NCBI GenBank assembly: GCA_001643675.2
Contig: LSRY02000013.1
Coordinates: forward strand, 620,001 to 684,000
Reading direction: 5' to 3'
Length of the DNA stretch: 64,000 bases
From: Monocercomonoides exilis PA203
Lineage: Eukaryota > Protista > Preaxostyla
Shown: piece by piece, positions 22,816 through 52,531 of the stretch
Layout: each line of letters begins with the position of its first letter
How positions within the stretch are numbered: position 1 is the stretch's first letter
The notes under the pieces: generated by a model
What the model was told of the DNA's origin: nothing
What the model saw: only the letters and a program-made list of their open reading frames with translations
Database searches by the model: none
Position numbers and translations under genes: made by a program

Positions 22816-25800
22816 ATGTTATTTATTTTTCTTTCTGTTTTGTACTTCTTAATTGAAATTACACAATGCGAAACACATGAAAACAGGCAAAGCACAACAA
22901 CACTTGGCAGATACGAAAAAACTTCATCGTTTTGCATTTCTGTTGGATGCTCGAGAATTTCTGAAGAAAGTCAATCAACATCTGATGAAAGCGCTGAGAG
23001 AAGAATGGTGGCTTTCCCAACCGAAATAAATACGAGAGAGGTGTTTTGCCACACTTTAGTTGTTTCGTCGATTGCATCTTGCAATTCGTCCATCAGTTGC
23101 TTGAATATTCATTTCCATTCAGTTGGAGGAAGAGAGATTGCATCCTTATTTGGTCAATCAACGTTTTTTGTCAGAAGTTGCCTGTTCTCTTCGCCAAAGC
23201 TATCAACTGATGCTTTCATTCATTCCAGATGTGGATCCATTCGCCTGCTCAATTTGTCTTTGGTTCGATCTCGATCGAATGGCCTTTTTCCTTCATTGGT
23301 TTCATTTCATCCGGAAGATGCACTTCAGGATTATCAAAGCAGACTCGAAATAGCAGACTCGACATTTTCTTCTTTTTCGTTGTGCGATTCAAAACCATTT
23401 GTCCAATCTTCCATTTTGAGCTTCATTTCGATTCAATCCAGTTCCTTCCAGAACATATCCCAACAACATCCCGAGAGAGGCACAAATGACAAAATTTGTG
23501 CATTTTTCTCATTATCGTCCAGCATTGTTTCATCTGTATCCAACCCAACAGAAGGCTGTATTTCACCAAAAGTTTCAGATGGGCAGCTAAATCTTTTTAA
23601 TTCGACATTTTTGAGGTGCTCCAAAACAATTGGTTCAAAAATAAATCACACAGGCTCAGAGAACACACTTGTGGACAATTGCTTGTATGAAAACACCAGC
23701 GGTTCGTTCATAACTCATAATTCAATTGGATCTGCGATTGTCAAAAATACAGATTTCAGAAATTCAACAAATTCTCGATGTATCTATGAAAAGCAAAGTT
23801 GTAAAATGCAATCAATCAACAATACCTTCAATTCAATCAGCTCAACTGGCTACGCATCATGCATCGCGCCTTGTGAAGGAACAGGACCTTTAACTATCCA
23901 GAATAATAACATGACAAATTGCACAGCACTCTGGGGAGGGGGTTGTTGCCACATTCATTCAGGTTTTTCCAATAAAGATCTCATATCAGATTGCTTTTTT
24001 TGCGATTGTTTTACCACCAGTACATATAGTGTATGCAACGGAGGTGGAGCAATTTGGAATGGAGAAGGAGCAAGAGTGTCATATTCCAATGTTATTTTCG
24101 AGAACTGCTGTGCAAATGCAACTGTTGGTGGTGCTATCTGTTTTGATTCAAGAGAAATGACTTTGACACATTACAGTTCACTTTCTTTTTGCTTGTTTGT
24201 TGATTGTAATGCCAACGGTGATGGAAAAGATATCTATGTTAAAAATCCATGGCAAAATGTGTTGAAAGAAAGCCAATTCAAGAATTGCTTGACAAATAGC
24301 TTTTCCTCCACAAATCGTCTTGTTTTTGAAGTTGGAGGTGATAAAAGCGTTTGGATGGAGAAAATTGAAATATTCGTTGACACTTCTGGAAGAGATGTCG
24401 CATTGTGTGGATGGAAGAATTCTCCCTGTTTGACAGTGTGCAACTCTGTCAGTGGTGCTGCTTTAACAAGAAAAGATCGTCCAGCTCATATCAACATTAA
24501 TGCTGGAGCTTATGTGGAGCAGTCACTTTTTGTTGACTCAAAATATCTTTCGTTTGAGGGCTCAACCAATTTTGGAACAAAGTTAAGTGGCAGTTCCTCA
24601 AGCAGCAACGCTCTTTTCCAAATATCATCGGGATATGCTTTCCTGACAGGATTGGCCATCATCAGGAACTCTTCTGCATCCGCATCTCTGCCATTATTCT
24701 CCATTTCCTCCGCTTCTGGAGAGCTTGTGATTGTCTCATGCAAAATATCTGCCGAGTCATCTCAAATATTCCCATTTGCAACAGCATTTGCATCCATTTC
24801 CACTGGCCACTTGATCATGTCAAAAACAACTGTCGAGTCCATGATGTTTTCTGATGTGTCTGCTCTCCGCATTGAGTCATCGACACTGCATTGCTTCTCT
24901 TTTGAGAATACCACTTTCAGAGGCATCACGAGAAATGAAGGAAGCGGATCAGTTTTTGATGTGACTTTGACTTCTGGAGACGAACTGAATTTGGATGAGC
25001 TGGAATTCGAAAGGTGCATGTGCAACAAAGGGAATGGCGGATCTATCAATTGCATCATTGATGCTGGCGGGAAAGTGACAATCGGCTCCACAAAAAGAAT
25101 TGCATTGGAGGAATGCACAGTGCCACAAGATATCATCAACAAAGGGAAAGGAGGTGGAATGCATTTGAAGTTGACCGGACTCTCATCAAACTTTGCAATA
25201 CGCGATGTGATGTTTGGCGGATGCAAAGCTTGGATGGGAGACAGCTTGTTTGTTGATGCAATTTCGTTGAACTCTTCAATAACAAGAATCTCATTGAACT
25301 TTTCACTATCAGGGATGAGCGACGATGATCTGATGGGCTTTGAAGAGCAGTGCAGAACAGATCCTGTTCCACTTCTTGCATATCTTCAGACATTCTCTGG
25401 AACAGCCCTTGTCGGGGGATCAAAAAACAGAGATTTCTCTGGTTGTGGCACAGCCAACTATCCCTGTGGAAGCATTGGATATGCTGCAGCACTTCGCTTT
25501 TCCAATGACAAAAGATACATCACACTGAACCAGAACTTTGAATGGACTGAATCCCTGACATTTAATGTCAATGCATGGGAGGTGAAAAGTCCCACAAGAG
25601 GCAGAGAAATCAAAGTGTTGAGCGAAGGAACAAATGCGTCTGAAGGAATGGTCGCTGTTGAGATTGCAACCTCCCTTTCGAATCTGAGTTTTTCAGCATC
25701 CTCACTGCTTGGACAGCATTCTTGTTTTCTTTTGTGCCAGCGTGAGGAGCTTGCGATGACTGATTGCTCGCTGAAATGTGCATCAAGTGGAAACACAGAA

Positions 25801-31800: not shown

Positions 31801-34716
31801 ATGGACTTCATCACAATCCACCAGGCAGACACCATCATCCTGTCATCCGCTCCATCCAGCAACGGGAAGAACGACAGGCAGTGCGGAACACTGAAGCTCC
31901 CGTGCCTGACAATCGGCTATGCACTCAGCCATTTGACAAACGATGTGGAAAGCAGACTTCTGGTGGATGGCGAGTCGTTTGCTGAAAAGGAGATGGATCT
32001 CGAAGATCTTTCAATCACATCTCGAAAGGAAGATCCCTCGAAACTCACCATATTCCCCGATATTCCTCACACAAGAGCCAGCATTATATCAACTGCAGGA
32101 TGCGTTTCTGTCTCGAAGATTGAGTTTTTCTTTGGCTCAGACTTTTCTTCAGCACACCACATTTTGCTCACAGCAGGTTCTGGAAGCCTGTCGTTGCTTG
32201 CATGCAGTTTTGCCCAATCACAAGAAGAAATCAGCGCTCAAGCGATTGAACTGACGCTCATCTCAATCGAAGATGGACAAGTCACAGCTTCACAGATAAA
32301 AATATGTCACATGCACTTTTCTGCTGAAGCGTCTATCCGAGTCGCTCATTTGGATGGCTGTGTGCTTCTCTCTGAAATGAAAGTGGATGATGTTGTTCTG
32401 AACAAAGGCACTTTCATTTTGATTGAAGGGGAGCAATCATTTTCTGAGCAGCCAAAGAGCGGAGGCGAAAGAAGTGTTGAACTCAAAGATGTGTCAGTTG
32501 ACAATGTTTCATCTGCACAGCAGGTGGAAGGAGTCATTGCTTGTTCATCGTTCAAGGGAGGGATTTATTTGGCGAATTGCTCTTATTCCAACGCCTCGTC
32601 GAAATCTGAGGCAGGAAGCATGATGACTTTTGTGGAATGCAGCAATGTGACATTATGTTGGAACGTGCTTCGAGGTGACTTGATTCATTCAGGAAAAAGT
32701 GAAAATGGCGGAGAAGCAGGCATTTGCCAATGGACAACCTCAGCTGTTTCGTTTGTCAACAGCAATGCAACCATGAAAGAAACCACAATCAAGAACTTTC
32801 CAAAAGGAGGTGTAACTGCAACGGGCGGACACTTGCTCATCGAGAAATGCGAATTCATGCGGAATGATCCGGGGATCGAAAAATACCCTTCAGCAAGAAG
32901 GAACATTGCGTGTGGAGGAAGCGGAAATGTCAATGTTGTGAGCCTGAAAGGAGGAGACGGGCAGGAAAAGAACGGATCGCTGTGGCTCTTGAACGAAGGA
33001 TGCACACTGAGCGGGATGGCTCAAGAAAGAAAATCTCCTCTGTTTGTTCCCATTTTGGAAAATGTGAAGATGGAAGACAAAGGAACAGAATTGAAAGTGA
33101 TATTCAAAGGGCAACTTCTTCTTCCATGCAACTTGTCGTTTCGAGTTGTAACAGCCATTCGTTCCGAGGCGTTGGTGGAGCAATACGAGTTCGAATGTGG
33201 AGGGTTTGTCTCAGAGAATGAAGCTTGGGGGATGATTCCTTCAAAATCAATTCGTGATGCTGAAGAGAAAGCAGAGGTGACTGTTTCAATATTGTTTGGA
33301 AAAAAGGATGCTCCATCAACAACTGATTCTTTCATTGTGAAGAATAAGAGTGAGTCTCAGACAAGTGGAGATGAAAGGATTGTTGAAGGAAAAAACAAAG
33401 AAAAATCAATATGGCCAATTGTGGTTGTTATTTTGGCTGTTGTTCTATTGATTGTTCTGATTGCTTCAATTGTTCTGGCTGTTCGATGGAGAAAGGCAAA
33501 GAATGAAGCAGAAGATCTGAGAGAGATTGTGAATGATAACATCAGAAAGGATCCGAAGGCATTCGAGATGGTGACGATGGAGATGTCGCCAGAAGAGCAG
33601 TGGAGGAGAGCAGAGAGGGAGGCTGAGAAGAAGGATGAAGAGAGGATGAAGAAGAGGGTATATGCGAAAAGCCTTCAGCATTCAGAATCGTCAGAGCATT
33701 TGCTGGCTGAGAGTGGATCGACTGAATACATTCTGGGAAAAGATTCAGACAAGATTCCTGAATGGGCATTGGAAAAGGTTGAGGAAGAAGATGACATATC
33801 GAGAAAGAGATCTCCTTCACCATCCACTTCATCCACTTCATCCACAGACACTTCAGACACTGAATCCACTTTTGTTCGAAGGGAGGATCTGTGCCCAACC
33901 ACTTCGTCAATGTCGAATCTGGTGGATGCGATGGCCTGCTCATCACCACATGAAAAGCTGATTGTGGATCTGAGGGATTCACTATTTATGTTGTTGCATG
34001 GAAGGAATAAGACAAAGGAAATGCCGATTGGTACTCTTCAAGAAAGGGAAGTCTCGGCTGCCCAAATCCTGTTCTGGGTGGCTAATCTCGCTCTCCACTC
34101 CTTTGATGAGATGGAAAATCCACTCCAATCGCTTGCCAATCTGAGCCCTCACATCGTATTATTCTCGGAGCACATGGTCATCTGCATTGTCATGCACTCA
34201 GACCTTTTATCAGATGACTCTGATTCATCATCGATCTCATCATCAACTGTTGTGACATCTGCCAGTGATGATGATGACAATGATGACTCCCTTCCCTCAT
34301 CGGCATTTGAGGATGAAGATAGCTTCAAAAAAGAGTGTCTGAGGTGGAAGGCACCAGAGCTGCTGATCAACAAGAACATGAAGGCAACAAAGAAGTCGGT
34401 GGTGTTCTCGATCGGGATGATGCTGTGGGAGTGCCTGACACTCCACATCCCGTTCGGGGAGTACGAGGCTGTGATTGCTGGAGACAAGATTGCAAAAGGA
34501 GAGGCTTTGAGCATGTGCGGAAATGCTGCAAGCTCATTCTCTTTGGTCGTCAGCGAATGCCTCTCCTTTCAGCCTTCCAACCGGCCTTCTCTTGTCTCCA
34601 TTTTGAGAGAGTTCTTTCAGAAGTTCCCCGAGTCAGCCAAGCTCCCCACAATGACTGACGCACTCTTCACAAACCAGCAATCTGCCATCAGCAGAAACAG
34701 CTGCTGCAGCTATTAG
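22816..34716 (+). CDS. Giant intronless type-I membrane protein (3966 aa): signal peptide, 8 Cys-containing beta-helix-like modules, TM helix, C-terminal pseudokinase
   Basis: First ATG at 22816 (MLFIFLSVLYFLIEITQC). Repeated GxD...CG....PC and GG(G/A)(I/M/L) motifs. TM IWPIVVVILAVVLLIVLIASIVLAV followed by RWRK. Kinase C-lobe motifs RWKAPELL and VFSIGMMLWECLT..PF, with no HRD or DFG. Confidence 0.85.
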   Translation: MLFIFLSVLYFLIEITQCETHENRQSTTTLGRYEKTSSFCISVGCSRISEESQSTSDESAERRMVAFPTEINTREVFCHTLVVSSIASCNSSISCLNIHFHSVGGREIASLFGQSTFFVRSCLFSSPKLSTDAFIHSRCGSIRLLNLSLVRSRSNGLFPSLVSFHPEDALQDYQSRLEIADSTFSSFSLCDSKPFVQSSILSFISIQSSSFQNISQQHPERGTNDKICAFFSLSSSIVSSVSNPTEGCISPKVSDGQLNLFNSTFLRCSKTIGSKINHTGSENTLVDNCLYENTSGSFITHNSIGSAIVKNTDFRNSTNSRCIYEKQSCKMQSINNTFNSISSTGYASCIAPCEGTGPLTIQNNNMTNCTALWGGGCCHIHSGFSNKDLISDCFFCDCFTTSTYSVCNGGGAIWNGEGARVSYSNVIFENCCANATVGGAICFDSREMTLTHYSSLSFCLFVDCNANGDGKDIYVKNPWQNVLKESQFKNCLTNSFSSTNRLVFEVGGDKSVWMEKIEIFVDTSGRDVALCGWKNSPCLTVCNSVSGAALTRKDRPAHININAGAYVEQSLFVDSKYLSFEGSTNFGTKLSGSSSSSNALFQISSGYAFLTGLAIIRNSSASASLPLFSISSASGELVIVSCKISAESSQIFPFATAFASISTGHLIMSKTTVESMMFSDVSALRIESSTLHCFSFENTTFRGITRNEGSGSVFDVTLTSGDELNLDELEFERCMCNKGNGGSINCIIDAGGKVTIGSTKRIALEECTVPQDIINKGKGGGMHLKLTGLSSNFAIRDVMFGGCKAWMGDSLFVDAISLNSSITRISLNFSLSGMSDDDLMGFEEQCRTDPVPLLAYLQTFSGTALVGGSKNRDFSGCGTANYPCGSIGYAAALRFSNDKRYITLNQNFEWTESLTFNVNAWEVKSPTRGREIKVLSEGTNASEGMVAVEIATSLSNLSFSASSLLGQHSCFLLCQREELAMTDCSLKCASSGNTEFGFGFIKISGGSLLLNRFSTASQVIFCSASLITLDGSGGLSCDECNMSSIKRMSGNGGCISVEKNNLLASNRNREIAIDGCCFSDCCVCEEGGEGGGVSAWLGENDVLIVNGSTCFQECCAPRDEGSGGKGGGMCICCDVASSSFEIWNEVVFSKEMQNNAEYGKDVFVWCGSGILLSQMINSSSIGFFDSTKLPTDALLLSGSENGSASPVIPLHVYLCILQSQIITDSNNGADHTHCGFPSFGCFSIDYCIENRINSSLNSINVVSSSTIQHEIAISSTSVNVYSGTLVPVSVRDTGRATQDGFVICSSPLSLSNLSLNVQRQFAAARKAFLFSSSLLSISNCCVEFSSETTNDPVSFNVIFVESGNLLISGFKMEKATTFTASPIFADNHNSIEIENSSLTGMRRINGDGGCLYLNEANGDGKSITIQRCNFTGSCDEGNGIRGGGIMANVGSGNALCVKNTSFENCMVPSEDRESVGNGLGGAMYLCLHESIRSLAFDNISFSGCNAWKGKQLFVDGEDLSQIASDWLQCFKTETILAEDMMGFERSTTNKEFHIPIVLYFRAFEEPCFVGGAEENGFDHTGCGFSDYPCETLQYGCLFRFGNSKAHLTLKDHFCFVNSIVLSSQEMDIEAEANGTLINILPDGAGEGEGLVETRNVVNFSGISFNVSAAFMEVNRKCLFLCTGSALSLIDCSVNTQSKKIDFGYVIVKGGDLHILRGVLNEIELLGAPVVELSGETSRCTLEDVEWNNLKTGSVAGLIAAKSCSHVEMKNSNVSGPAQFGNHGVFFVEESSSATLEKSNFTLLTRNEGNGAVIEGRVGGGKSLSVNSCSFTAISCLASGSKGGSIITSVSANGELLFNNNTVEESKVKKADGLGGGMHIEFLSSEVGYSMKNNKFLSNDALLGYDVYLVCPTPRMTIDRNKWTGSAAEGQEEKTMWVIDPSFPEGSDTLLKYLFPRPDEIIYVNTLNGHTDGCGADDYPCNELWLASGKMTEDKRILQIISSCELRGAIERDNDPMTIEGKGDDGSRLIVTKEGHLKMTVGTALTTLTFSKIGFELPQTSDFAELVEVGVGTTYFVGCSFGSANQEALAETSMRIITGRGGKISFDGVIIKNMVFNADCGIFLSGEAGCTFDSVEVSNIRSSGIGMLVGEGGTEVLLNELRSTNCSFGNGSFAVLKKVKILNWKNGTSMTDCTNEGGNCGCGLISVEGESDVQINGTSIRLCSASEDHGRGGGLYLDISDNPLLNIKLTEITFADNCAFEGKDMFVLSTDVNASAVRQRFAFQLQNERNESIVNLKGTDNVLLKGSVVDLLLFLIQRKENAIFVSRSGMDILGCGSAEFPCQTFWRGYENIDLEAHDRVMRIDSRGNIKIHYDLSSFRVMSNKADEKCVVLFENAMEANEEKKSIIQNSKELKLEMIQFTLPSSFTNNENILLHSESDNSCLSLNGCTFNRNSASDLEFCLIHSEAGDVQLLNCDFSSLSFSSTPVQLNSSCEIIGCNFSSISAKSSQKGGVVCVELLGEATFSMSQTETVCCGCSEEQGRGGFIFLECKGALADNPFAFGESVSFAGHKAQIGKNMFISAGDLNKSVTLSTLCFDFRKSREDVLLFCGRDLVWEDTTLLRFLETYTSQTIFVSSGGYDIMRCGSEEDPCRSMWKGMRQMDEAAPQKWIKIADETIVQDSFVLSNYVIEHDETEEQSRGKLIFANKTESGTDPVINNEGILKLNRIAVALSEGFCNEQLFSIVGKSGLIEMSDCSFAAETRGDAPAKVGFLLMEGGVLNVSKLSVENVMSEMGVFAISNRCDCAMQHLVASGCTFSGESFVKIVSRSYQKENAADCSVSIKDSTFQLITRNGNGPAIISSSGCASAISISGCTFDSCKAVGSERGGGVFEELQSGGALSMSKSSVIQCGCSNYNGKGGGLFICTSFAGALSFLFEKMAFKGNSAKVGNDVFVECVDIENQINETQFCFDLRETAYTRLNAIYGIDSTNHQCDTNLMDFITIHQADTIILSSAPSSNGKNDRQCGTLKLPCLTIGYALSHLTNDVESRLLVDGESFAEKEMDLEDLSITSRKEDPSKLTIFPDIPHTRASIISTAGCVSVSKIEFFFGSDFSSAHHILLTAGSGSLSLLACSFAQSQEEISAQAIELTLISIEDGQVTASQIKICHMHFSAEASIRVAHLDGCVLLSEMKVDDVVLNKGTFILIEGEQSFSEQPKSGGERSVELKDVSVDNVSSAQQVEGVIACSSFKGGIYLANCSYSNASSKSEAGSMMTFVECSNVTLCWNVLRGDLIHSGKSENGGEAGICQWTTSAVSFVNSNATMKETTIKNFPKGGVTATGGHLLIEKCEFMRNDPGIEKYPSARRNIACGGSGNVNVVSLKGGDGQEKNGSLWLLNEGCTLSGMAQERKSPLFVPILENVKMEDKGTELKVIFKGQLLLPCNLSFRVVTAIRSEALVEQYEFECGGFVSENEAWGMIPSKSIRDAEEKAEVTVSILFGKKDAPSTTDSFIVKNKSESQTSGDERIVEGKNKEKSIWPIVVVILAVVLLIVLIASIVLAVRWRKAKNEAEDLREIVNDNIRKDPKAFEMVTMEMSPEEQWRRAEREAEKKDEERMKKRVYAKSLQHSESSEHLLAESGSTEYILGKDSDKIPEWALEKVEEEDDISRKRSPSPSTSSTSSTDTSDTESTFVRREDLCPTTSSMSNLVDAMACSSPHEKLIVDLRDSLFMLLHGRNKTKEMPIGTLQEREVSAAQILFWVANLALHSFDEMENPLQSLANLSPHIVLFSEHMVICIVMHSDLLSDDSDSSSISSSTVVTSASDDDDNDDSLPSSAFEDEDSFKKECLRWKAPELLINKNMKATKKSVVFSIGMMLWECLTLHIPFGEYEAVIAGDKIAKGEALSMCGNAASSFSLVVSECLSFQPSNRPSLVSILREFFQKFPESAKLPTMTDALFTNQQSAISRNSCCSY

Positions 34717-37064: not shown

Positions 37065-37213
37065 ACTGATATGATACAAAAGGAAAAACATTCAAACGAT
37101 TGAGAAATTTGATTTTTTAAAAAATGAAATCATTGAAAAAAATAAACTTTTTCAAGAGATGAATTCATAATTTTCTATATTAAAAATTTATTTTAAAATA
37201 TAATTTTTAACGG

Positions 37214-37925: not shown

Positions 37926-38282
37926 AATAGAGGATTTCTAAATTAATATTGTATTTTTTATTTTTTATTTTTTATTTATTTTATTTCTTTTAGTTTCTTT
38001 TGGAATATCTTTTGGAATTTAATTTACCTTTCGAGTATTTTCAAGATGATTTTTGTATGAATGTATGTTTGAATGCTTTTCAATGATGAATTTTTCTGTT
38101 TCTTTTTTACAAATTCCAAAGGATTTTGTTTTGAAATTGCATTTGAGTTTTGGAAAATAAATTATTTTTTAAATAAGATGAACTGACAATTTTGTTTGTT
38201 TTACATGAACATTTGTTTATTTTCTTTTCCAGTATTTCGAATTTTTGAAGGTGTTTGAAAATTTATTTTGAATCAAATCGAA

Positions 38283-41992: not shown

Positions 41993-44900
41993 GCTCTTGT
42001 TCTTCAGAATAAAAGAATCAGTTGATGAAAAGGCCTTGCCTTTACCAAACAAAATACAGACAAAAACCTCTTCTTCTCTTGCAGCCGAATTTATAAGAGA
42101 CATGCTAATCTTTCCTTTCGCTTCATTTTCGGAATTGAAGTTGTCTTCAGAAAGCGGAAAAGTCTCTATTGAGCTGACATCATCTATCTTTGACACAATC
42201 TGGAAACTCAGATTGCATGGGATGAGGAGCCTTCCTTTGAAAGTCAGTTCAGCAGCATCTCCATTTTCTTTCACTTCTACAGCGCTCAGTGATGGGATAA
42301 AGAATTCAGATAGCCTTTCAGTTGGAATCCCCGTGAGCTCACATCCTTCATTCAAAATCCACAGTGATGTGTTTGGCAGTAGTCCATCTCCTCCCTTCAA
42401 GCTGTCGATCTCAAGCTTTCCGTTGTGTTCGCAGAGGATGTTTCTTCTGATTGAAGGGAATCTGGCGATTGATGGATCATTGCCCACAAACTCTCCTTTC
42501 ACAATTCGAACGCTTACTCCAGAAGCAGATAGACCGCCGTGTGATGCGTTGGAAAACAAGGTATCTGAGATGGAAGCGGTGCTTCTTTCAAGGCTCGCCA
42601 GCGAGCTGTTCCAGGAGCAAAGCTCGGATGATTGCGAATTTATGTTGTTTTCTTCTCTGTTTGAAAGATCTGTATTATCAAACAGGCACGAGCTGATGCA
42701 AATGTCAGTACATGATGTGAATGACACAAATCCACCTTTCATCGCAGATGAATGACTGTCCACAATGCTGCATTCTTTTAAAGAAACATTTTTGGCATTT
42801 GCGAACGAAATCAAAGGTGCCCCATAGTCTTTCTCGAAGCACCCATCGAAAGAGGTGTTGCATATCTCAAACATTCCATCATCGCATATGATGACACTTG
42901 CATAATAATCCATGCTCTTGAAAGAGCAAGATGTGACCTTGACATTTCCTGTGCAGCTGCTTATTGCAGACGATGCCAAGTGGAGTCCAGAAAAAGCACA
43001 CTCACTGAAATAGACATCTCCAGAAAGCACTGTGAATAAAGTGCAAGGAATGGAAAGCTGGGATTGGTCAGTTCTTGGAGATGTGAACGAGCACGATTCC
43101 ATCCTCAAACTGTCGGAGCTCATAAAGATGAAAGAAGAATGTGAGGCAAGAGCATTTCTTTCAAATACAAAGCTCAGACGAGACAAAATCACATGATTCT
43201 GAATTGTGATAAGAGACACGCCTGCCTGGGATATGCCTGCCTGAACTCGAATGGCTGCATCATTTCTTTTGAGAGACGTGAGGGTCATGTTGTCCAAAAT
43301 GCATTCTTCATCAACGACAGATTCACCATCAACAAGCATCATGCTTGTGATGTCGCTTGACAAGTGGAAGCAGGCATAACCAATCGAAAAGCATGGCATC
43401 TTGGCCGATCCGCATTGTCTCTCGTTTTTTCCGTTTTTGCCATCATCAGAAGACACGATGATGAGATCAGACTCATATATTGTGATGAAGTCCATCAAGT
43501 TTGTGTCGCTCATGTGATCTGTTGTGTCTGAGCCATAGATGGCGTTGATAGACGAATACACACCCTCTTTCAAGGAAAACCTGAACTGGGTTTCGTTGAT
43601 CTGTTTTGTGATGTTTTGGCACAGAATGAAGATGTCATTCCCAACGCCTGCTGTGTTTCCCGTGAAGAACATTTTCTGAAACAGAATGTCCAAAGTTCCC
43701 TCCACTTTTGTCGACACGTGGATGCCTCCTCCCCTCCCGCTCATTGAGCAGCTGCATCTTGTCATTGTTGTGTCACTTATTCTCAACTCACCCCCATCGT
43801 TCAGGAAGAACGACACTGCGCCACCCTTCATGCTCATTTCAGCCTTGCAGTCAACAAACTGTGATCTGCTTATCAAAACGACGAGGCTATTTTGGCCAGT
43901 GGAATGAATAGCGCTTCCGCCATTGTCGTTTCTTGTCACTGAAGAAAGGGCCGAATCTGTCACGTTAATCAATCCAATCCCATTTGCCGCATTTGTTGAA
44001 GACACACTTTCAAAAGCGCAGCCACGATCAATTGTGCACTGGGAAATCTTCACAGCGTGAAATTCACACACACACGCATCGTGCATCACGAACACACTTT
44101 TCCGCACCGATGAAGATTTCATCTCAAGATCATCGACACTGAGCTTTCCTCTCCCCATCAGCACAAACGAACAGTCTGCTTCTCTGTTATCTGCCGCATT
44201 GCTTTGAAAGGCACATCTTCTCAACAACAGCTCATCTCCTTCACTGAGGATCACACAATCAGCCGAGTTCTCAAAGTTTTTGCCAATGGACAGCATTATC
44301 GCGCATATGGACATCTCATTTCTGTTCAGCGCATATGCACCACTTGTTCCATTCATCTTTTTTGAAAAAACAATTTCGCTTTGACTATCTTCTTCTTTCA
44401 GAATTGAGGCAGAAGCCACTGCAAAACCTGAGAGATCATATTCATTATCCACATTTGCAACCCCTTCAATGAAGATTTGTTTGCCATCATCCGTGTGACT
44501 GAGGTGATTCACGCCAGTCCAGAATGATTCGCATGGATCATCTTCGCTTCCGCATCGCAGCACATCTGCACCACTGGAGGAAACAAAAATGGTATTATTT
44601 GCATATGGAATTAAAAATCTGAATAAATCGGTGTCAGTGAAAATATCATCACTCCCCACAAACACATTTGAATCGTTGATCAACCCAGAGTAGTTGAAAG
44701 AGAATGCCTGCGTTGTTATGGAGCTGTTCAAGCTTGCTGAAAGCACGAATATGTTCTTTCCAATCTTTGCAACATTCATCGAAAACACAGTGTTGTTGAA
44801 TAAAAATTGCTCTGTTGCATAAGCCTCTGTGCAGTCAATGAAGCAAGCCCCTCCATTCCCATTGTTCTGTGAGCATCCACTATTCGTCATGGAAACATCC

Positions 44901-47900
44901 TCCATGTGCAATCTTTCATGTGCATGAAGATTGATTTTCATAATCCCTCCGGCACAACTGTCTGGAGCTGATATATCGTTGAACGAACAAGAGCGAATAC
45001 TCATGGGTGAGGCAATGGCAAAAGGAGTCTCCGAAAAATGAAGACTCTGAACTGAACAGTTGCACAACTCCACATCTCCTCCTGTTGTTGAAAGAAGAGA
45101 AAACTGCAAAATCATATCGTGTGATGGTGAATACAGCTCAAAAGAGCAGCTTTGCAAAGAAACGTGCGAGACTGATATGGCATCTGAAGATGAAGAAATG
45201 AGACTTGCTTGATCTGGAACAAATGTTGTTGGGACAGAAAATATGATATGAAGAAACAAAAAGCCGCCTGAAGCATGAAATATGGGATTGCTGCCCGTTG
45301 TTTCGAGCGTTGGTTCAAACCTCAGGCGGCTCATTATCTCTGATGAACAAGACGAAATGTTCATTTTTGAGATATCAAAAGAATCTCTGACAGATGTATT
45401 TTTATCGATCAGCATGTTCTTTTCCTCGGAGCTACTGTCAATGTGCCAATATCCATGCCTGAAAGTCTGGCATGGAACAGCCTCGTCACCACAGCCCGCA
45501 ATGTCCGCGCCTTGGCGTGAAACGACAATTCTGTTTGAACTGAATGGCACCAAAAACAGAACAAGGTCCATTGTTCTCTCAGCAAAGGCTGTGAAGTCTG
45601 TTCCCTCGGCAAACACGAGTTTTGTGTTGTTTGAGTCGAACATTTTGAAGTTGAATCGTTCGTTTGTTATTGATTCGTTGAGGCTTTTGCATTCAACAAA
45701 AATGTCCCTGCCTTTGTGCGCTTTGTTGCCTCGAAATGTCAAAGATACAAATGAAAATGTGTTTGACGAATCGTTAAAAGCATGCAAGAATATTGCCCCT
45801 CCACGACTTCTTTCCTCATCAACCCAGCAGTTTTCAAACGAAACATTTTGAACAGTGAGACTGGACTTGCCTCCGATCTTGCAGTTTATCCCTCCACCTT
45901 CACTTATCAAGGTTTTGCATCTATCAAATGTCGAATTGAATATCTCCAGTCGAGATGCATTTGTGGCACATATTGCAACACCATTTGAAGCGCCACAATT
46001 TGTGACTGACGATCTGTTGAGAATCAAGGCAGCACCAATGCCACAACAAAACAATTCATCTCCGTCAATGTTAATATTTGCAACAACTGTCTGAGTCACA
46101 ACCACTGTTCCTCGATCAGCTTTGCATATTCCACAGTTCGATCCAAATTGAATGTTTTCTATTTTGAGATCATCAAACTGGATTGTACTTCCTTCCCCTC
46201 GGACAACCCACATATATGAATTTGTGCACTCTATTTCTGTATCTCCAAAAATGCATGAAACAATGCTCACACGGCCAACGCTTCCCACAATCACTTCTGA
46301 GTGTTCGCCTGGTGTCGATGGCACAAAAAACAGCAGGTTCTGGAGAGTGAGTGAAGTGGATGCTGGGCCAGACGAGAGCTGAATATGGCCTTGTGTTGCA
46401 ACATGCATTTCAGATTTATCATCACCTCCGCGGATTGTCAGCTTTTCTTCTTTTCGATCTATTTCTCCCAAGAGCCATGCTGAGTTCTGTATATGTAGGA
46501 TTGTTTTTGATGTGCCCAATTTTTCATATCCAAAGCCCAACTCCTTGCATGGATTGACTCCCGAGCCGCAACTTCCCATTTCATTCCCCAATGATTCGTC
46601 CACATAAATGATATCATCATCTGTTGGAAACAGAAAGCGCAAGAGTGTCATATTGATGCGAGCATCTGTGAAGTCAAACACCCACTTGTTCCTCTCTTCT
46701 TCACCTCTTTCAGCAGTTCCTGCCCACAGCAGCGGATCGACAATTGTGCTTGGCTTTGTGCAGTTGAGGAAGATGTCTTTTCCCCAGAGTGCATCATTGC
46801 CTTCAAGCACAACATTCTTCATTGAATATGCAACTTCCACACTTTCGAAAGTGATGAGCAATCCTCCTCCATCTCCATCAATTGCTGGAACTTTGCTTCG
46901 GCATACGCTGTTGTTGTCGAACAACAATTCTCCACCGCTCAACACTTTCACGTGCAAGCTCCCTCCTTGGGAGCCAGATGACGAGCAAACAATGTCATCA
47001 AAGATGCATCCATTGATCTGCATGCTATTTTCATTTCCCACAACACCCACCACAGAGCATCCACCATCAGTCGTTCTTTTCAGTCCGCTCATGTTGCATT
47101 CAAGAAGAGTTAGCCCACAAGCCTCTTCCACCAAAATGGTGCAATGGCTGGAATATGTGCTGTTGGCCGATGATAAATTCTGAAAGACTGGATGAGCACC
47201 ATGCTTTATCTCAACAAGTCCTCCTGCTTCTGTTCTTTTAACATTACTCATTGTCATTGCACTGACTGTGAAATTTGCTTCTTTTCCGGAGAATTCAAAG
47301 GCGCTGACTCCACTGAATTCTATCTCCGATAAACCAAACCCGTCAATTTCGATGGTGCAGTCAGTTGCCACAATAAGACTGTATTTGCACTGCAGCCCTG
47401 CAACTTTCATCTCCAAATCTACATCCTTGAATGAAAGGGTTGATTTGCTGCACAGAAAAAGACTGTTCAATGAACAAGGAGCGAAAAACGATGGGAGGAG
47501 AAATGTTAATATGGAAAATGCAACTGATGTTCTGATTTCGAAAAAACTGCTCACCTTGAGGTTTTCTTCAATTCCTTCGACTTTGACTTTTTCTCCTTTG
47601 CTCTCCACATCTATCTCATATGCTTTGTCCGAGAATATTACTGACTTGCTGAAAGAAAATGAGCTTTGCAAGCGAATTGCCGCCTTTTCTTCATTGAACC
47701 GATTATTCCCAGCATATGTTATTGTGCTGCACGGATACCAGTCAAACCCGCATAAAGGATAATCCACACCTCCAACACCGTTCACAAATGCTGGAGTGTT
47801 CCATTCTGCTTCAAACAAGGCGAGAGGGATTTCTATGGCTTCATCATTGCCATATCCACAAAAGTCATTCCATCTTTCTCTTTCAGTTGGCATATTCAGT

Positions 47901-50900
47901 GCAAACTGTTGCTTTCCCAGGTTGATTGAAAGAGCATCACCCTTCAAATAAATGTTGTTTCCAACAAATGCACTGCATTCGTTGAAAGACAAGTTTCCAA
48001 AGGCAAATCCGTAATTCTGCTTGCAGTCAAAGAACAGCCAACCTCCTTTCCCATCAGTTCTATTTTCTGCCTGACATCCATTTGTATTGCAATCAGTTAT
48101 TTCCAATTCTCCATCTGCTTCAAGCACCACTCTCATTGCTCCTCCTTTCATGCTCTGATCTGCAAAAATCTCACTGAAATTACACCCGGCTATCGAACAT
48201 CTACATCCCAGTGATGCGCCAAATAACGCTGAACTGTCTTTATCTTGATGAGTGATGTTGCTGAACGAGCAATTCTTCATTAGGATTTCTGCTGTTTCAG
48301 GTGCATTCATTGGTGGAACTATGTCAAATGAAAATAATGGCATTGCCAATCTGCAGTTTGTCACAGTCACAAACGCCAGATGGATTGATGATCCTTTTGT
48401 TTTGATTATAACATAATTGTTGGGCACTTCTGATTCATCTTCTATTTCTATTTGGCAGTTTGTAAGCGAGAGTACACCTTGGTCAGTCGATGAAGAAATC
48501 ACAACTTTGACTTCGTTGGAGATATGAGGATGAACAATTATCTTCAATTGTTCGAGTTGTGTGATGCCTTTGGATGAGATCATTGTTGTTCCACTTTCAA
48601 TTGCAGATGGCATTGTGAGAGATGCCTGCTGTTCTCTATCTGATTTCATCTTCACATTACTCAAATCGATCTCATGGATCACAAGAGACCCTGTCCTCAC
48701 AGTTATTACTCTTTTGTCGACAGTTTTGAAGCGAGAAAGAGCTTGATCTATTGAAGCGCATGGGTAGCACTCAAAGCCGCAGGCAATTGTGTCTGCCCCT
48801 TCCAACGAGGAAGCAAGTATTTCCGAGCCTATTGCCTGGAAAAGCAATATCAGCGGAATTGCATGTTCTGAATCGTTGCCATCAAACCCTCTCATGGAAT
48901 CGAGAGATATGTCTGCCATTGTTTTGGCAAATGGAAGGGTGCTGTCGGTGGCGCTTGCCTCCAAACTTGGGGATTTCATGAACAGATCGCTTCCGCATTT
49001 GGCAGCATTTGGCGAGCTTTGAGAAAAAGAAGGCTCAGAGACAACAAATTCGACATCTTGATGGTCGAACTCAAGAAATAATCCTCCTCCAAAACCCCCT
49101 TTCTTTTCGACAGATGCTTCACAGCCAGCAAATGCGCAGTTTGTGATCTCCAGATGATTGCTCGTTCCAATGCAGCAGCACACGCCTCCTCCGCATGCTT
49201 CGTCACTTTTTATTTTGCATTCTTCAAATGTGCATTTCTCAAAGCATTCGTGGCAAGTCAATGCAACTTCTGGCTTGTGCATGCTAATGGCACCTCCCTT
49301 GCCCAATGAGCATGTCACCCTCTTGAATGTGCAATTAGACACATTCACATTAGCAGTGCAACCAGAAATCTTCACAACAGATCCGTCTCTGATTTGAGAG
49401 TTTTCTATTATCGAGTCGTTCAACATGAAAGATTCACATGCATCTGTGACAAATATGGCATCCAGCGTGGATGTGCCATCAAAAGAGGTCGAGCGCATGA
49501 TGAGTTGATTTATCGACACCTGTCCTCCTCTTGCAGAAAGAAACGAAATGTTTGTCGATTCCTTTTTGATTGCAACCTCGCACTCTTTGACAATCAGCGA
49601 AGAAGACTTGCACACAATCAGTGCCTCTTTGAGGCCAATGCTCTTTGGCAGTGCAAATGCGAAGTTTGTTAGCGCCGACTTTGAGACTGTTTCAATCATC
49701 CCTGCTTGTTCACCGCTGAAATTGCAATCGTCCAAGCCAATCGTCACTTTGCCAACTCTTGACATTATTGTCCATTCGAAAGCATCAAGAAGCAATTCAG
49801 ATCTGAGGGAAAAGGGAGAATGAAGCTCAACAAAACGGTTGCTGTCTTTGAACCAAAGAGAGGCTGCAGACATAATTGATGAGCATGGGACCTCAAAATA
49901 CCCGCACCTGCTGAAATCTGCACTTTTCTCTCCACCAACATGTGCAAATACAGACATATTATCCCACAGATAGACCACAAGAGGGATGGACAATGTTTCT
50001 CCAGCTGTTGATCTCTCATATCCAGCATATCCATCAAGATCATTGCGTCCTGGCCCAAACTCAAGGGTTGTGGTGTTTATCAGTTTGTCCAGCTGCCAGG
50101 CATCGACAAATAGATTGTATCCCCGATCGGCTATGCATCCTTCAAACGCCAGCTGCTTCAAAAGAAAGTTGTCTGCATCTTTGTCAAGCTTTATGAGCAA
50201 TCCTCCTCCACAGCTTGGACTCACCAAAGAACCTATGGCCTGGCAGTTGTTCATCTTGACTGTCGCTCCTTTGTCAGATGCATTTCCTATTGAAAACGAT
50301 GATCCACGTTCCATGTGTATCTGCATCCCACCCCCGTTTCCTCTGAGGCACACGCAATCTGCAAAAGAAACATTTGACAAGCAAAACTCATTTCCATCCA
50401 AAAGTTGTGCTTCAAAAATTGCACCGTTTCCGCTTTGTCGAGTGATTGTGTTGAAAGTCACATCGCTCATTTTCAGATAATTTGGAGAGGAAAACGATAT
50501 CAGTTGCTTTTCGTTGCTGAATGTTGTGAAGCAAACAGAAGCAAGTTCTGCCAGACCCCCATTAACAATCATCAAAGGAGTTGAAAAAGTCGTTGCTGGG
50601 GATGCTTCTCCCTTTATTGTTGAAAATTGTATTGTCACTCGCCCACTCCCACTCATCATCAAGACAGATGATTGTGGATTCGAATTCGAAGAAGTGTGCA
50701 CCACAGTGAAATATGAAACAGACAAAATGCCAGATGACACTGAAAACAGTGCTTTTCCATCACCAACTGCATTGGAAGTCAGCGTTGATTCTTCGAATTC
50801 ACAGCCTCTCAAACTCACATTCATTTCATCAACAGGGATCGATCCGTGGATGTATGATCCTTCAGAAATCACTAACGGTTGTGAACTGACTCTTTTGCTA

Positions 50901-52531
50901 ATTCCCTTTTCGATTGTTCTGCAAGGCAAGCCTCCGAACCCACATTCACTTCGAGAATCGTTGCCAAACACAGATGACACGAACACAACTGGGATGGTTG
51001 ATGGAGGAGGTCCAAGCCAGTCACTGTGATCAACAGTATCAATCATCACTCGTATCGGACAACCACTCAGGGAGTAACTGTGAACGAAAGATTCATTTGT
51101 CACTTTTGTATTATAATAAGCTCCACCTGTTGAAATATCACAACCATAAGATGTATTTCCTATTGTGTTTTTTTCAAAGAAGCAAAAATCCAGCTTTGCA
51201 ATAATGCTTGAAATACTTTCACGTTCCCAAACAAAAGAAACTGCACCATGTACTGTAGACGAATTACATAAAATTATAAGACATTCTGATATTCTTAAGT
51301 TCTTAGAGGAAAAACAGATCCCCATTCCTGCTGTGTGATACGTAGCGACACAATTCATAATTGTGTTCATTTTGAATAAATGATCTCCGATGTCACTGCT
51401 AAAGAATAGTGCAGAATAAAATTGAGCATCGCATCTATCGAAGAAACAAGATGTTACAACTTCTAATGATGGTGAACGCAAGTTTAATCCTCCTGCTGCG
51501 TATCCAGAGGAACAATTTGTATAGTTACATTTATTTGAATAATGTGTTCCTGCACCTTCGTGGTTAACAGCTGCTCCATATACATAATAAGCGTTATTTG
51601 ATGCATTTATCATTTCGAATAAGCAAAATGAAACATTCAAAGTTGCATTTCCACCGATGTTCAATGCCAAGCCCATCCGATTTGAATCACTTATGTTTGA
51701 AAAATGGACTGAGTAGGCTATGACATCTCCTGAAGAATAGCTGTTGATGGAGCCGTTTGTCGGGAAGTGAGTTTCAGAAGAGTGGGAGAATGAAGTGTTC
51801 ATCATCATCATCAGATTTTGTGCTGGTGTGACAACAACTCCATATTGGGCATTGGGACATGAATAGAATTTTGAGTTCTGAATTAGGCACGAATTCCAAA
51901 TTGATGGGGTAGCATGTGATGTGAAGCGATGAGGAAGGGAGGGCGAGTGAGAAATGTTTGAAAAGCTGCATCCATCAGCAACAAAAAATGTGACATGGCC
52001 AGTTGCCAAAAATGAAGAAACATGAACATTTGTCAATGAATTGAAAGTGCAATCTTTGCATTGCAGCATGAATAACGAGCTTTCTTCACAATTCATTGTT
52101 AGAGGGTGTTGAATAACATGTGAGTGTGATGCTATTGAGAAATTAAATAACTCCACTGAGCCTCCCCAAGACGACACTTGTGAAGATATGTGGTCATTAT
52201 TTGATTGCACTCTGCACCTGTGCAAACACAAGTTGGATGCAAGTTTCAATTTGAAAGTGGAGGGAAATGAATTCTGACAGAAGGATGCGTCATTGATGAT
52301 GAGCGATGAATTTAACAGTGCAAATTGAGATTTCATGCAACATTCAGACTTTCCATGTGATTCTTGAATATTGATTGAATCTTGAAGAGACAGCAAATCA
52401 AAAATATGTGAATTTTGATGACAACAGGAAGGCATTGGACAAGATTTCGAAGATGAGAGGCATTCGACATTGGCAATAAGATTGAAAGAGAAAATAATGT
52501 AGCAAGAAACTGAAAACAAAGAAAATGTCAT
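40634..52531 (-). CDS. Giant intronless type-I membrane protein (3965 aa), paralog of 22816..34716
   Basis: Signal-like N-terminus and 8 GxD...CG....PC modules. TM segment identical to the paralog; pseudokinase tail near-identical. Confidence 0.85.
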   Translation of the reverse strand: MTFSLFSVSCYIIFSFNLIANVECLSSSKSCPMPSCCHQNSHIFDLLSLQDSINIQESHGKSECCMKSQFALLNSSLIINDASFCQNSFPSTFKLKLASNLCLHRCRVQSNNDHISSQVSSWGGSVELFNFSIASHSHVIQHPLTMNCEESSLFMLQCKDCTFNSLTNVHVSSFLATGHVTFFVADGCSFSNISHSPSLPHRFTSHATPSIWNSCLIQNSKFYSCPNAQYGVVVTPAQNLMMMMNTSFSHSSETHFPTNGSINSYSSGDVIAYSVHFSNISDSNRMGLALNIGGNATLNVSFCLFEMINASNNAYYVYGAAVNHEGAGTHYSNKCNYTNCSSGYAAGGLNLRSPSLEVVTSCFFDRCDAQFYSALFFSSDIGDHLFKMNTIMNCVATYHTAGMGICFSSKNLRISECLIILCNSSTVHGAVSFVWERESISSIIAKLDFCFFEKNTIGNTSYGCDISTGGAYYNTKVTNESFVHSYSLSGCPIRVMIDTVDHSDWLGPPPSTIPVVFVSSVFGNDSRSECGFGGLPCRTIEKGISKRVSSQPLVISEGSYIHGSIPVDEMNVSLRGCEFEESTLTSNAVGDGKALFSVSSGILSVSYFTVVHTSSNSNPQSSVLMMSGSGRVTIQFSTIKGEASPATTFSTPLMIVNGGLAELASVCFTTFSNEKQLISFSSPNYLKMSDVTFNTITRQSGNGAIFEAQLLDGNEFCLSNVSFADCVCLRGNGGGMQIHMERGSSFSIGNASDKGATVKMNNCQAIGSLVSPSCGGGLLIKLDKDADNFLLKQLAFEGCIADRGYNLFVDAWQLDKLINTTTLEFGPGRNDLDGYAGYERSTAGETLSIPLVVYLWDNMSVFAHVGGEKSADFSRCGYFEVPCSSIMSAASLWFKDSNRFVELHSPFSLRSELLLDAFEWTIMSRVGKVTIGLDDCNFSGEQAGMIETVSKSALTNFAFALPKSIGLKEALIVCKSSSLIVKECEVAIKKESTNISFLSARGGQVSINQLIMRSTSFDGTSTLDAIFVTDACESFMLNDSIIENSQIRDGSVVKISGCTANVNVSNCTFKRVTCSLGKGGAISMHKPEVALTCHECFEKCTFEECKIKSDEACGGGVCCCIGTSNHLEITNCAFAGCEASVEKKGGFGGGLFLEFDHQDVEFVVSEPSFSQSSPNAAKCGSDLFMKSPSLEASATDSTLPFAKTMADISLDSMRGFDGNDSEHAIPLILLFQAIGSEILASSLEGADTIACGFECYPCASIDQALSRFKTVDKRVITVRTGSLVIHEIDLSNVKMKSDREQQASLTMPSAIESGTTMISSKGITQLEQLKIIVHPHISNEVKVVISSSTDQGVLSLTNCQIEIEDESEVPNNYVIIKTKGSSIHLAFVTVTNCRLAMPLFSFDIVPPMNAPETAEILMKNCSFSNITHQDKDSSALFGASLGCRCSIAGCNFSEIFADQSMKGGAMRVVLEADGELEITDCNTNGCQAENRTDGKGGWLFFDCKQNYGFAFGNLSFNECSAFVGNNIYLKGDALSINLGKQQFALNMPTERERWNDFCGYGNDEAIEIPLALFEAEWNTPAFVNGVGGVDYPLCGFDWYPCSTITYAGNNRFNEEKAAIRLQSSFSFSKSVIFSDKAYEIDVESKGEKVKVEGIEENLKVSSFFEIRTSVAFSILTFLLPSFFAPCSLNSLFLCSKSTLSFKDVDLEMKVAGLQCKYSLIVATDCTIEIDGFGLSEIEFSGVSAFEFSGKEANFTVSAMTMSNVKRTEAGGLVEIKHGAHPVFQNLSSANSTYSSHCTILVEEACGLTLLECNMSGLKRTTDGGCSVVGVVGNENSMQINGCIFDDIVCSSSGSQGGSLHVKVLSGGELLFDNNSVCRSKVPAIDGDGGGLLITFESVEVAYSMKNVVLEGNDALWGKDIFLNCTKPSTIVDPLLWAGTAERGEEERNKWVFDFTDARINMTLLRFLFPTDDDIIYVDESLGNEMGSCGSGVNPCKELGFGYEKLGTSKTILHIQNSAWLLGEIDRKEEKLTIRGGDDKSEMHVATQGHIQLSSGPASTSLTLQNLLFFVPSTPGEHSEVIVGSVGRVSIVSCIFGDTEIECTNSYMWVVRGEGSTIQFDDLKIENIQFGSNCGICKADRGTVVVTQTVVANINIDGDELFCCGIGAALILNRSSVTNCGASNGVAICATNASRLEIFNSTFDRCKTLISEGGGINCKIGGKSSLTVQNVSFENCWVDEERSRGGAIFLHAFNDSSNTFSFVSLTFRGNKAHKGRDIFVECKSLNESITNERFNFKMFDSNNTKLVFAEGTDFTAFAERTMDLVLFLVPFSSNRIVVSRQGADIAGCGDEAVPCQTFRHGYWHIDSSSEEKNMLIDKNTSVRDSFDISKMNISSCSSEIMSRLRFEPTLETTGSNPIFHASGGFLFLHIIFSVPTTFVPDQASLISSSSDAISVSHVSLQSCSFELYSPSHDMILQFSLLSTTGGDVELCNCSVQSLHFSETPFAIASPMSIRSCSFNDISAPDSCAGGIMKINLHAHERLHMEDVSMTNSGCSQNNGNGGACFIDCTEAYATEQFLFNNTVFSMNVAKIGKNIFVLSASLNSSITTQAFSFNYSGLINDSNVFVGSDDIFTDTDLFRFLIPYANNTIFVSSSGADVLRCGSEDDPCESFWTGVNHLSHTDDGKQIFIEGVANVDNEYDLSGFAVASASILKEEDSQSEIVFSKKMNGTSGAYALNRNEMSICAIMLSIGKNFENSADCVILSEGDELLLRRCAFQSNAADNREADCSFVLMGRGKLSVDDLEMKSSSVRKSVFVMHDACVCEFHAVKISQCTIDRGCAFESVSSTNAANGIGLINVTDSALSSVTRNDNGGSAIHSTGQNSLVVLISRSQFVDCKAEMSMKGGAVSFFLNDGGELRISDTTMTRCSCSMSGRGGGIHVSTKVEGTLDILFQKMFFTGNTAGVGNDIFILCQNITKQINETQFRFSLKEGVYSSINAIYGSDTTDHMSDTNLMDFITIYESDLIIVSSDDGKNGKNERQCGSAKMPCFSIGYACFHLSSDITSMMLVDGESVVDEECILDNMTLTSLKRNDAAIRVQAGISQAGVSLITIQNHVILSRLSFVFERNALASHSSFIFMSSDSLRMESCSFTSPRTDQSQLSIPCTLFTVLSGDVYFSECAFSGLHLASSAISSCTGNVKVTSCSFKSMDYYASVIICDDGMFEICNTSFDGCFEKDYGAPLISFANAKNVSLKECSIVDSHSSAMKGGFVSFTSCTDICISSCLFDNTDLSNREENNINSQSSELCSWNSSLASLERSTASISDTLFSNASHGGLSASGVSVRIVKGEFVGNDPSIARFPSIRRNILCEHNGKLEIDSLKGGDGLLPNTSLWILNEGCELTGIPTERLSEFFIPSLSAVEVKENGDAAELTFKGRLLIPCNLSFQIVSKIDDVSSIETFPLSEDNFNSENEAKGKISMSLINSAAREEEVFVCILFGKGKAFSSTDSFILKNKSESQTSGDERIVEGKNKEKSIWPIVVVILAVVLLIVLIASIVLAVRWRKAKNEAEDLREIVNDNIRKDPKAFEMVTMEMSPEEQWRRAERETEKKNEERMKKRVYAKSLQHSESSEHLLAESGSTEYILGKDSDKIPEWMLEKDEEEEIRKRTPSPSTSSTSTTDTSDTESTFVRREDLCPTTSSMSNLVDAMACSTPHEKLIVDLRDSLFMMLHGRNKTKEMPIGTLQEREVSAAQILFWVANLALHSFDEMENPLQSLANLSPHIVLFSEHMVICIVMHSDLLSDDSDSSSISSSTVVTSASDDDDNDDSLPSSAFEDEDSFKKECLRWKAPELLINKNMKATKKSVVFSIGMMLWECLTLHIPFGEYEAVIAGDKIAKGEALSMCGNAASSFSLVVSECLSFQPSNRPSLVSILREFFQKFPESAKLPTMTDALFTNQQSAISRNSCCSY

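Follow-up and report, generated by a model that had tools for sequence, protein, structure and literature searches.

Monocercomonoides exilis is a model eukaryote without mitochondria. Its largest gene family comprises 332 protein tyrosine kinases (320 TKL; Karnkowska et al. 2019, PMC6759080), and unclassified repeats overlap its kinase genes (Treitli et al. 2021, PMC8767320). The same genome harbours Rab7L, a published clade of very divergent Rab7-like paralogues under birth-and-death evolution (PMC6759080). Here we describe a locus in which members of both families are joined in a palindrome. It lies in a 64,000-nt stretch of contig 7 of the M. exilis PA203 nuclear genome (LSRY02000013.1, positions 620,001 to 684,000; hereafter the window), at 642.8-672.5 kb of the contig, and we refer to it as palindrome A. 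Its layout resembles that of two described systems. With the sex-chromosome palindromes of primates and mouse (human Y P1-P8, X) it shares long inverted arms, a unique spacer, an arm identity well above that of related copies and arm-to-arm conversion, as well as genes in arms and spacer. In those palindromes the arms are also GC-enriched and the spacer inverts as a by-product, features that may have their counterpart here (PMC8327919, PMC8981503, PMC3723533). With the variant-specific surface protein (VSP) pairs of Giardia it shares membership of a metamonad surface-protein family with a variable ectodomain and a conserved transmembrane (TM) segment and tail, and the arrangement in inverted, near-identical tail-to-tail or head-to-head pairs with genes or pseudogenes between them, for which conversion has been suggested (PMC7641422). 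We consider it most probable that palindrome A is a gene-bearing palindrome whose arms are kept alike by arm-to-arm conversion, as a by-product of the genome's recombination habits. Coordinates refer to the window unless contig 7 or another contig is named.

Palindrome A and its relatives on contig 7

Two giant genes point at each other, tail to tail, and both 12-kb frames remain open across the outer arm edges. Such a convergent, intronless pair with inverted arms around a single-gene spacer had been proposed from the letters of the window alone, and this layout was recovered throughout. The arm edges, 33316/42028 and 37081/38266, lie about 20-35 nt from those of the original prediction (33352/41992 and 37064/38283), and the spacer measures 1184 bp instead of 1218 bp.

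22816..34716, + strand: left giant gene, an intact open reading frame (ORF) of 3966 aa counted from the first ATG, no intron
40634..52531, - strand: right giant gene, an intact ORF of 3965 aa, with the architecture of the left gene
33316..37081: left arm, the final 467 codons of the left gene plus 2365 bp of non-coding DNA
38266..42028: right arm, the reverse complement of the left arm
34717..37081, + strand: non-coding 3' block of the left arm, 2365 bp (mirror 38266-40633 in the right arm)
37082..38265: unique spacer, 1184 bp
37308..37925, + strand: Rab7L-clade pseudoGTPase gene, 205 aa, intact, with a CaaX-like end (Pfam Ras, 2.8e-28)

BLASTN between the two halves, the right one reverse-complemented, returned a single alignment (33316-37081 vs 42028-38266), in which the arms, 3766 and 3763 nt long, are 98.3% identical over 3770 columns. 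The differences occupy 66 columns, of which 46 fall within 33716-34002 and a few at both edges. From 34003 to 37051 there are no substitutions and five single-base indels, located in T-rich or low-complexity runs, and identity is exact across 34882-36363. At the protein level, 452 of the 467 tail residues are identical between the two giants, and the ectodomains, predicted to be highly diverged, are colinear with 30% amino-acid identity. The spacer contains one ORF of note (37308-37925).

We searched the genome for the tail and its non-coding block behind other giant ORFs, as had been suggested with the original prediction. The 2.36-kb block is present in exactly 13 copies, all on contig 7 between 120 and 850 kb, so that the alternative of a block unique to this locus does not hold. 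The whole arm recurs at 88-93% identity, and many contigs have the coding tail by itself, at about 80%. Four related palindromes account for eight of the 13 copies, and five are single:

Palindrome A: contig 7, 642.8-672.5 kb; arms 3.8 kb; spacer 1184 bp
Palindrome B: 41 kb upstream of A; arms 8.8 kb, 99.9% identical; spacer 1167 bp
Palindrome C: contig 7; arms >14 kb, 99.4-99.9% identical; spacer 2.6 kb
Palindrome D: contig 7; a 9.6-kb palindrome continuous through its centre, arms 4.8 kb; Rab7L on each arm

The question whether other convergent pairs enclose a central gene was answered by the three further palindromes, all of which carry Rab7L. The gene is intact in A and D and has an in-frame stop in B and C, and the spacer of A is homologous, in both orientations, to the centres of B, C, and D. 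Palindrome D has a 360-bp fold-back element at its axis (contig 7: 716605-716968). Family tails also converge on contig 32 (695596-700080) and contig 22 (981956-989440), where they lie 2.1 and 5.1 kb apart and constitute candidate tail-to-tail palindromes. A 4.6-kb DIRS-like retroelement (reverse transcriptase, RNase H, and tyrosine recombinase) was observed in just one arm of palindrome C (310879-315513).

Origin of the likeness between arms

Partner arms are 98.2% identical in A, 100% in B, 99.6% in C, and 98.7% in D; identity between loci is at most 94%. Trees built from the inner coding part and from the block join partner arms as sisters with 100% support, and the inner arms of B (8.7 kb) and D (4.4 kb) contain no substitutions. 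The ectodomains of the same genes point to other relatives. The left ectodomain is 94-98% like that of the right gene of locus D, its nearest paralogue, and the arms of these two genes are about 90% alike, with a synonymous divergence (dS) of 0.12 in the ectodomain and 0.36 in the tail. The nearest paralogues of the right gene are both genes of locus C (93-94% over 11-15 kb), and its arm is 91.5% like theirs. Because the ectodomains are closer than the arms to genes at other loci, the arms of A must have been homogenised after those genes separated. What these alignments and trees show is non-reciprocal copying (gene conversion) between the inverted arms.

Toward their outer ends, over 700 nt, the arms form a mosaic that includes the following patch:

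33616..34002, + strand: mosaic patch in which the arms differ, the left arm being like B and the right arm carrying alleles shared with locus C (mirror 41340-41730 in the right arm)

Both arms of B match the left arm perfectly (100%) at 33616-33915, where the right arm reaches 89% identity. Seventy-nine columns distinguish the two arms of A; at these, the left arm has 60-63 alleles in common with B, and the right arm has 43-44 in common with C. A tree of the outer coding part places the two A arms apart. The arms of A and B form a clade, while the ectodomains of A and B are unrelated at the DNA level. The perfect match of the patch to B, together with the clade of A and B arms, implies that tails exchange sequence between loci too, and the patch in the left arm is an ectopic one from the neighbouring palindrome B. 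It had been suggested that the tail and its 3' block serve as a recombination platform and that family loci exchange ectodomains ectopically. On an evolutionary timescale the first idea finds support in the arm-to-arm conversion and the B-identical patch. The discordant histories of tails and ectodomains speak for the second. A dedicated system found no support.

The non-coding block contributes evidence of a different kind. Our sequencing-run evidence consists of short assembled contigs (unitigs) from eight public runs, the longest pieces on the locus being 100-500 nt and none spanning an arm. RNA unitigs tile 34970-36186 free of mismatches and end before about 36400, and RNA depth is near zero at 36400-37400; the block probably consists of a 3' untranslated region (UTR) of about 1.6 kb and 0.7 kb of intergenic DNA. 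The GC content of the non-coding arm is 34-40%, compared with 20% in the non-coding spacer and 25-27% in ordinary intergenic DNA. The step in GC between arm and spacer is of the kind expected from GC-biased conversion, although a 3' UTR within the block may have a composition of its own and contribute to it. We considered a hidden gene in the block and rejected it, the ORFs being broken in other copies except for one 76-codon frame; a search for RNA genes in the block found no tRNA and, with E up to 0.1, nothing in Rfam. We also considered whether an RNA joint linking 36351 to 38928 on the other strand was a hairpin RNA or an intron. It corresponds to a 67-nt skip in an A-rich stretch and has no GT..AG ends, and we read it as a low-complexity or transcript-end artefact.

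We propose that repeated segmental and inverted duplication on contig 7 would have yielded the 13 tail-plus-block modules and the four palindromes, with palindrome D, which has a fold-back element at its axis, as the likely starting form. Non-reciprocal recombination between arms would then hold them near-identical. Conversion would stop where homology ends, about 30 codons before the TM helix, the ectodomains being too diverged to pair, so that the arm edge coincides with the boundary between the variable and the constant part of the protein. As side effects of the palindrome, signalling tails would be homogenised and Rab7L would be carried along at duplication. Conversion may well be ongoing.

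A one-off recent inverted duplication, in which a single 3.8-kb copy of one gene end was made and the arms have not recombined since, would also leave the inner arms without substitutions, as expected right after duplication, and it would account for a boundary at the edge of homology. However, four related palindromes are equally near-identical even though their loci differ by 6-10%, and a single event does not suffice for the mosaic of the outer 700 nt, where only the left arm has the B-identical patch. Moreover, the higher GC of the non-coding arm compared with the spacer is suggestive of biased conversion over a long time. We regard a single duplication as unlikely. There are also points that count against the reading we prefer, a gene-bearing palindrome with arms kept alike by conversion. 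Ongoing conversion looks the same as a small number of recent copying events would. No more than about 50 bp of the D centre is common to the spacers of A, B, and C, which makes their derivation from a D-like form a mere possibility, and the origin from a fold-back element rests on one related locus. Polishing of an Oxford Nanopore Technologies (ONT) assembly with short reads could create some of the perfect identity across repeats, of which no sign was found. Lastly, the RNA contigs come from metatranscriptomes, in which DNA admixture is possible.

The assembly itself deserves scrutiny, since fold-back nanopore reads or short-read polishing could in principle generate the inverted layout or the identity of the arms. 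Strain PA203 was assembled with Canu from ONT reads (N50 8.9 kb) into 101 contigs totalling 82.3 Mb, which were corrected with Nanopolish and ten rounds of Pilon (PMC8767320). In favour of an artefact of this kind, single-base indels in short A/T runs part the arms and break ORFs in B and D, in a manner that resembles residual errors. Against it, palindrome A sits inside a 1.86-Mb contig with distinct unique genes on either side, and its two 12-kb ORFs run uninterrupted over the arm boundaries. The left half (gene, arm, and central gene) is colinear with locus D over 16.8 kb, and the right half with locus C over 15.3 kb. In the 2016 and 2022 DNA runs, unitigs read without mismatch through both inner junctions and through the left outer boundary: a 440-nt contig of the 2016 run spans the junction of left arm and spacer (36981-37420, no mismatches), a 96-nt contig spans the right junction (38226-38321), and short-read contigs cross the left outer boundary at 33316. 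The 33 alternative letters listed for the runs all occur in one of ten other aligned copies, so they give no pointer to collapsed arm differences. A collapse of the arms, which the original prediction had named as the observation that would undo it, was thus looked for and not seen, and an assembly artefact is very unlikely, with hardly any probability left to it. As a separate observation, single-base indels within runs of 3-4 A interrupt the giant genes of palindrome B and of the left side of D (contig 7: 598837, 601436, and 713138). Where such indels differ between otherwise identical arms of B or D, they may be residual nanopore errors, not true pseudogenes.

The arms had further been thought to allow a flip of the central gene. 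Taken to its full extent, this would make the spacer a programmed invertible cassette, in which Rab7L, flipped by crossover between the arms, acts as a regulatory switch and ectodomains are deliberately reassorted by exchange with other loci. Homologous crossover between inverted 3.8-kb arms does permit inversion, the spacer has opposite contig orientations in A and B, and the histories of tails and ectodomains are discordant. The orientation is uninformative, however, since one entire palindrome may be inverted with respect to another. An attempt to read past flips from the paralogues was equally uninformative, C having the same gene type on both arms and D having Rab7L on both. No recombinase gene was found in or beside the locus, and the spacer encodes just Rab7L; the sole recombinase domain in the window (9394-10554) belongs to a DIRS-like retroelement, which makes the nearest tyrosine-recombinase ORF 23 kb distant. 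The arms are kilobases of ordinary gene sequence with no short recombination sites, and a flipped Rab7L would still lie between identical 3.8-kb flanks, with no apparent change of promoter or context. RNA depth is near zero over 36400-37400, where no read-through from the giant genes into the spacer was seen. In primates, recombination between palindrome arms inverts the spacer only rarely, as a by-product (PMC3723533). With no recombinase, no short sites, and identical flanks after a flip, a programmed switch is distinctly unlikely, and the flip cassette was not confirmed. By analogy, an occasional inversion of the spacer by crossover would be expected as a by-product of the conversion that we favour. 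The expectation of an undescribed dedicated system likewise found no support; the gene family and the Rab7L clade are published (PMC6759080), and the palindrome recurs on contig 7.

The giant receptors and the central Rab7L gene

Both giants have a signal-peptide-like hydrophobic N-terminus, nine modules, one TM helix, and a cytoplasmic tail of 410 residues. The parts of the constant region are as follows:

33409..33483, + strand: TM helix of the left gene (aa 3532-3556), a 25-residue hydrophobic run followed by basic residues
41861-41935, - strand: TM helix of the right gene, mirror of the left one
33949..34626, + strand: kinase-like (pseudokinase) domain of the left gene, Pfam PK_Tyr_Ser-Thr, C-lobe only, 1e-08
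40724-41401, - strand: kinase-like domain of the right gene, mirror of the left one

Eight of the nine modules begin with a CG-x-PC cap motif (Cys-Gly...Pro-Cys), at matching positions in both giants. No Pfam model matched the ectodomain at threshold. An AlphaFold (AF2) model of module 8, built on an alignment of 16 modules, is all-beta, with a predicted local distance difference test (pLDDT) of 88 and a predicted template modelling score (pTM) of 0.89. All 50 of its 50 best Foldseek matches in the PDB are right-handed parallel beta-helices (probability up to 1.0, E only about 1e-3), among them glucanases, epimerases, tailspikes, and pectate lyases, and its neighbours in the feature space of a protein atlas carry DUF1565, Chlam_PMP, and Beta_helix. 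From these models, the ectodomain modules are predicted to be right-handed parallel beta-helices (pectin-lyase fold).

The tail model has pLDDT above 90 in its folded parts and matches the kinase folds of insulin receptor, FGFR3, ILK, and MLKL (E about 1e-6 to 1e-7), with only two strands in the N-lobe. The tail alignment contains no HRD Asp, no DFG, and no Gly-loop or VAIK Lys; L-S-P-H-I-V stands at the position of the catalytic loop, and a Ser/Asp-rich insert replaces the activation segment. A kinase fold that is matched while the catalytic residues are absent supports the description of the giants as receptors with a pseudokinase tail, which agrees with what had been proposed for them. The same tail is found in at least 389 MONOS_* paralogues of M. 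exilis, proteins of 2200-4200 aa, with 67-87% identity among the 120 matches listed. The suggested design of a variable ectodomain on a constant tail is therefore apt, the tail being kept at about 70% in at least 389 paralogues vs 30% identity between the two ectodomains.

We examined selection by comparing the left giant with its nearest paralogue, the right gene of locus D. The ratio of nonsynonymous to synonymous substitution rates (dN/dS) is 0.28 in the ectodomain and 0.17 in the tail. Diversifying selection on the ectodomain was ruled out in this comparison, as no 435-codon window exceeds 0.38. Judged by these ratios, purifying selection is acting on both ectodomain and tail. The giants may be adhesin-like, phagocytic, or prey- or glycan-binding receptors with a scaffold tail.

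The protein encoded in the spacer is closest to M. exilis Rab7L4 (77%), followed by an unnamed model (70%), Rab7L3 (51%), Rab7L2 (48%), and Rab7L1 (38%); other Rabs reach at most 38%. With a top match of 77%, this copy is missing from the protein collection searched. The label of pseudo-GTPase given to the gene at the outset proved right: the P-loop Lys is replaced by Val, G3 reads D-V-P-F-N in place of DxxG/Gln, G4 reads N-G-S-D in place of NKxD, and the C-terminus is C-F-L-M, CaaX-like and not CC or CxC. The P-loop Lys, the G3 motif, and the G4 Lys are also replaced in most of the Rab7L clade. Between the copies of A and D, which are free of the in-frame stops found in B and C, dN/dS is 0.46. 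Contig 7 holds most of the Rab7L copies found. Annotated Rab7L1 maps there at 506946-507614 with 100% identity, about 5 kb past the start of the single giant gene E. The Rab7L of palindrome C (contig 7: 297037-297654) has an in-frame stop, and a public 176-aa model, "putative Ras family," aligns to it with a gap of 29 residues at that point and matches it otherwise; the annotated intron over the stop is probably not real.

A more novel idea is that the constant module is a functional unit in which the pseudoGTPase binds the dead-kinase tail, for example so that receptors or their cargo enter an endocytic or phagocytic pathway specific to the lineage. In that case palindromes would preserve the fit between tail and Rab7L as ectodomains diverge, and the matched pair would spread within the subfamily by ectopic exchange of tails. 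A structure-based binding test of Rab7L with the tail gave a median of 0.42 (runs 0.18, 0.42, and 0.60), the best of three controls being 0.00, with partner pLDDT of at least 74 and contact agreement between runs of at least 28%. In calibration, passes at or below 0.60 are wrong more often than right (5 of 78 solved complexes, 4 of 4 passing mismatches). We give the binding idea, a product of modelling, a slim chance of being right. That Rab7L hitch-hikes with the duplicating module is the simpler reading and explains the birth and death of the clade.

Several features of the window lie outside the palindrome. A DIRS-like retroelement in several shifted frames occupies 6945-11157; it encodes a reverse transcriptase (7277-8506) and, farther along, a tyrosine recombinase (Phage_integrase; 9394-10554). 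In AT-rich intergenic DNA, 12721-12939 and 13477-13695 form a small palindrome of 219-nt arms, 99% complementary, around a 537-nt spacer, probably a fold-back element; similar self-palindromes occur on contig 7 at 700222-701369 (1.16 kb, 96%), 503263-503620, and 716605-716968, the last being the axis of D. Likewise AT-rich and intergenic is an imperfect hairpin at 53265-53520, downstream of the start of the right giant, with 105-nt arms that are 78% complementary and a 46-nt loop. Tandem 9-nt (three-codon) repeats of similar sequence are found inside ORFs at 18178-18496, 56952-57114, and 58368-58485. Finally, a 1582-aa ORF at 524-5272 encodes an unusual partial Hsp70-like protein, the N-terminal part of which matches only a segment of Hsp70 (profile positions 89-181).

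Comparison with known systems

Of the components of this locus, the TKL family and the Rab7L clade are already published. The palindromic organisation, the conversion between arms and between loci, the coincidence of arm edge and domain boundary, and the linkage of Rab7L are new in the sense that we found no papers on them in the literature searched. A literature search combining Monocercomonoides with palindrome returned nothing relevant, and the terms "palindrome" and "inverted" are absent from PMC6759080 and PMC8767320; by term search, the linkage of Rab7L to the giant-gene 3' module is absent from both of these genome papers as well.

The two giants are members of the M. exilis TKL family, as indicated by the Pfam kinase match and by 70-93% tail identity to hundreds of MONOS_* proteins. 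The published count speaks of kinases, whereas the tail described here is without catalytic residues and most of the N-lobe, and the family would be better named pseudokinase receptors. Further corrections to annotation concern the frameshifts at sister loci, which may be nanopore errors, and at least one gene model that skips a stop by an invented intron. The copies of Rab7L with premature stops in palindromes B and C fit the published birth and death of that clade, which differs here in being physically linked to the giant-gene 3' module and duplicated inside palindromes. Birth and death of Rab7L would follow from this linkage, the genes duplicating and decaying as passengers of palindromes. 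With Chlamydia Pmp, DUF1565, and other pectin-lyase-fold proteins the giants share modules of the right-handed parallel beta-helix type, but here a single eukaryotic type-I membrane protein strings nine of them together ahead of a pseudokinase tail.

Invertible systems such as the Hin and Gin invertases, shufflons, and the 2-micron FLP also have a segment between inverted repeats that can in principle be flipped. They differ from palindrome A, which has no recombinase, no short sites, and no re-pairing of promoter and gene, and in which the repeats are kilobases of gene sequence.

The locus offers a concrete mechanism for part of the repeat content that overlaps the kinase family and had been a puzzle to the annotators, and it explains how one signalling tail can stand under very different ectodomains in the largest gene family of M. 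exilis. Compared with sex-chromosome palindromes, its arms are short (4-14 kb vs tens to hundreds of kilobases), it belongs to a cluster of four related palindromes on an ordinary protist contig, and its arm boundary falls inside genes, so that two ectodomains have one shared tail. Giardia VSPs are not homologous to the giants, whose ectodomain is not CXXC-rich and whose 410-residue cytoplasmic tail ends differently from the CRGKA of VSPs, and the arrangement alone is alike. In Giardia muris whole VSP genes are identical, whereas here only the tail and the downstream block are, and the central gene is always Rab7L. Palindrome A and its relatives would thus extend palindrome biology of the sex-chromosome type to an ordinary chromosome region of a protist, in parallel to the inverted surface-protein pairs of Giardia.

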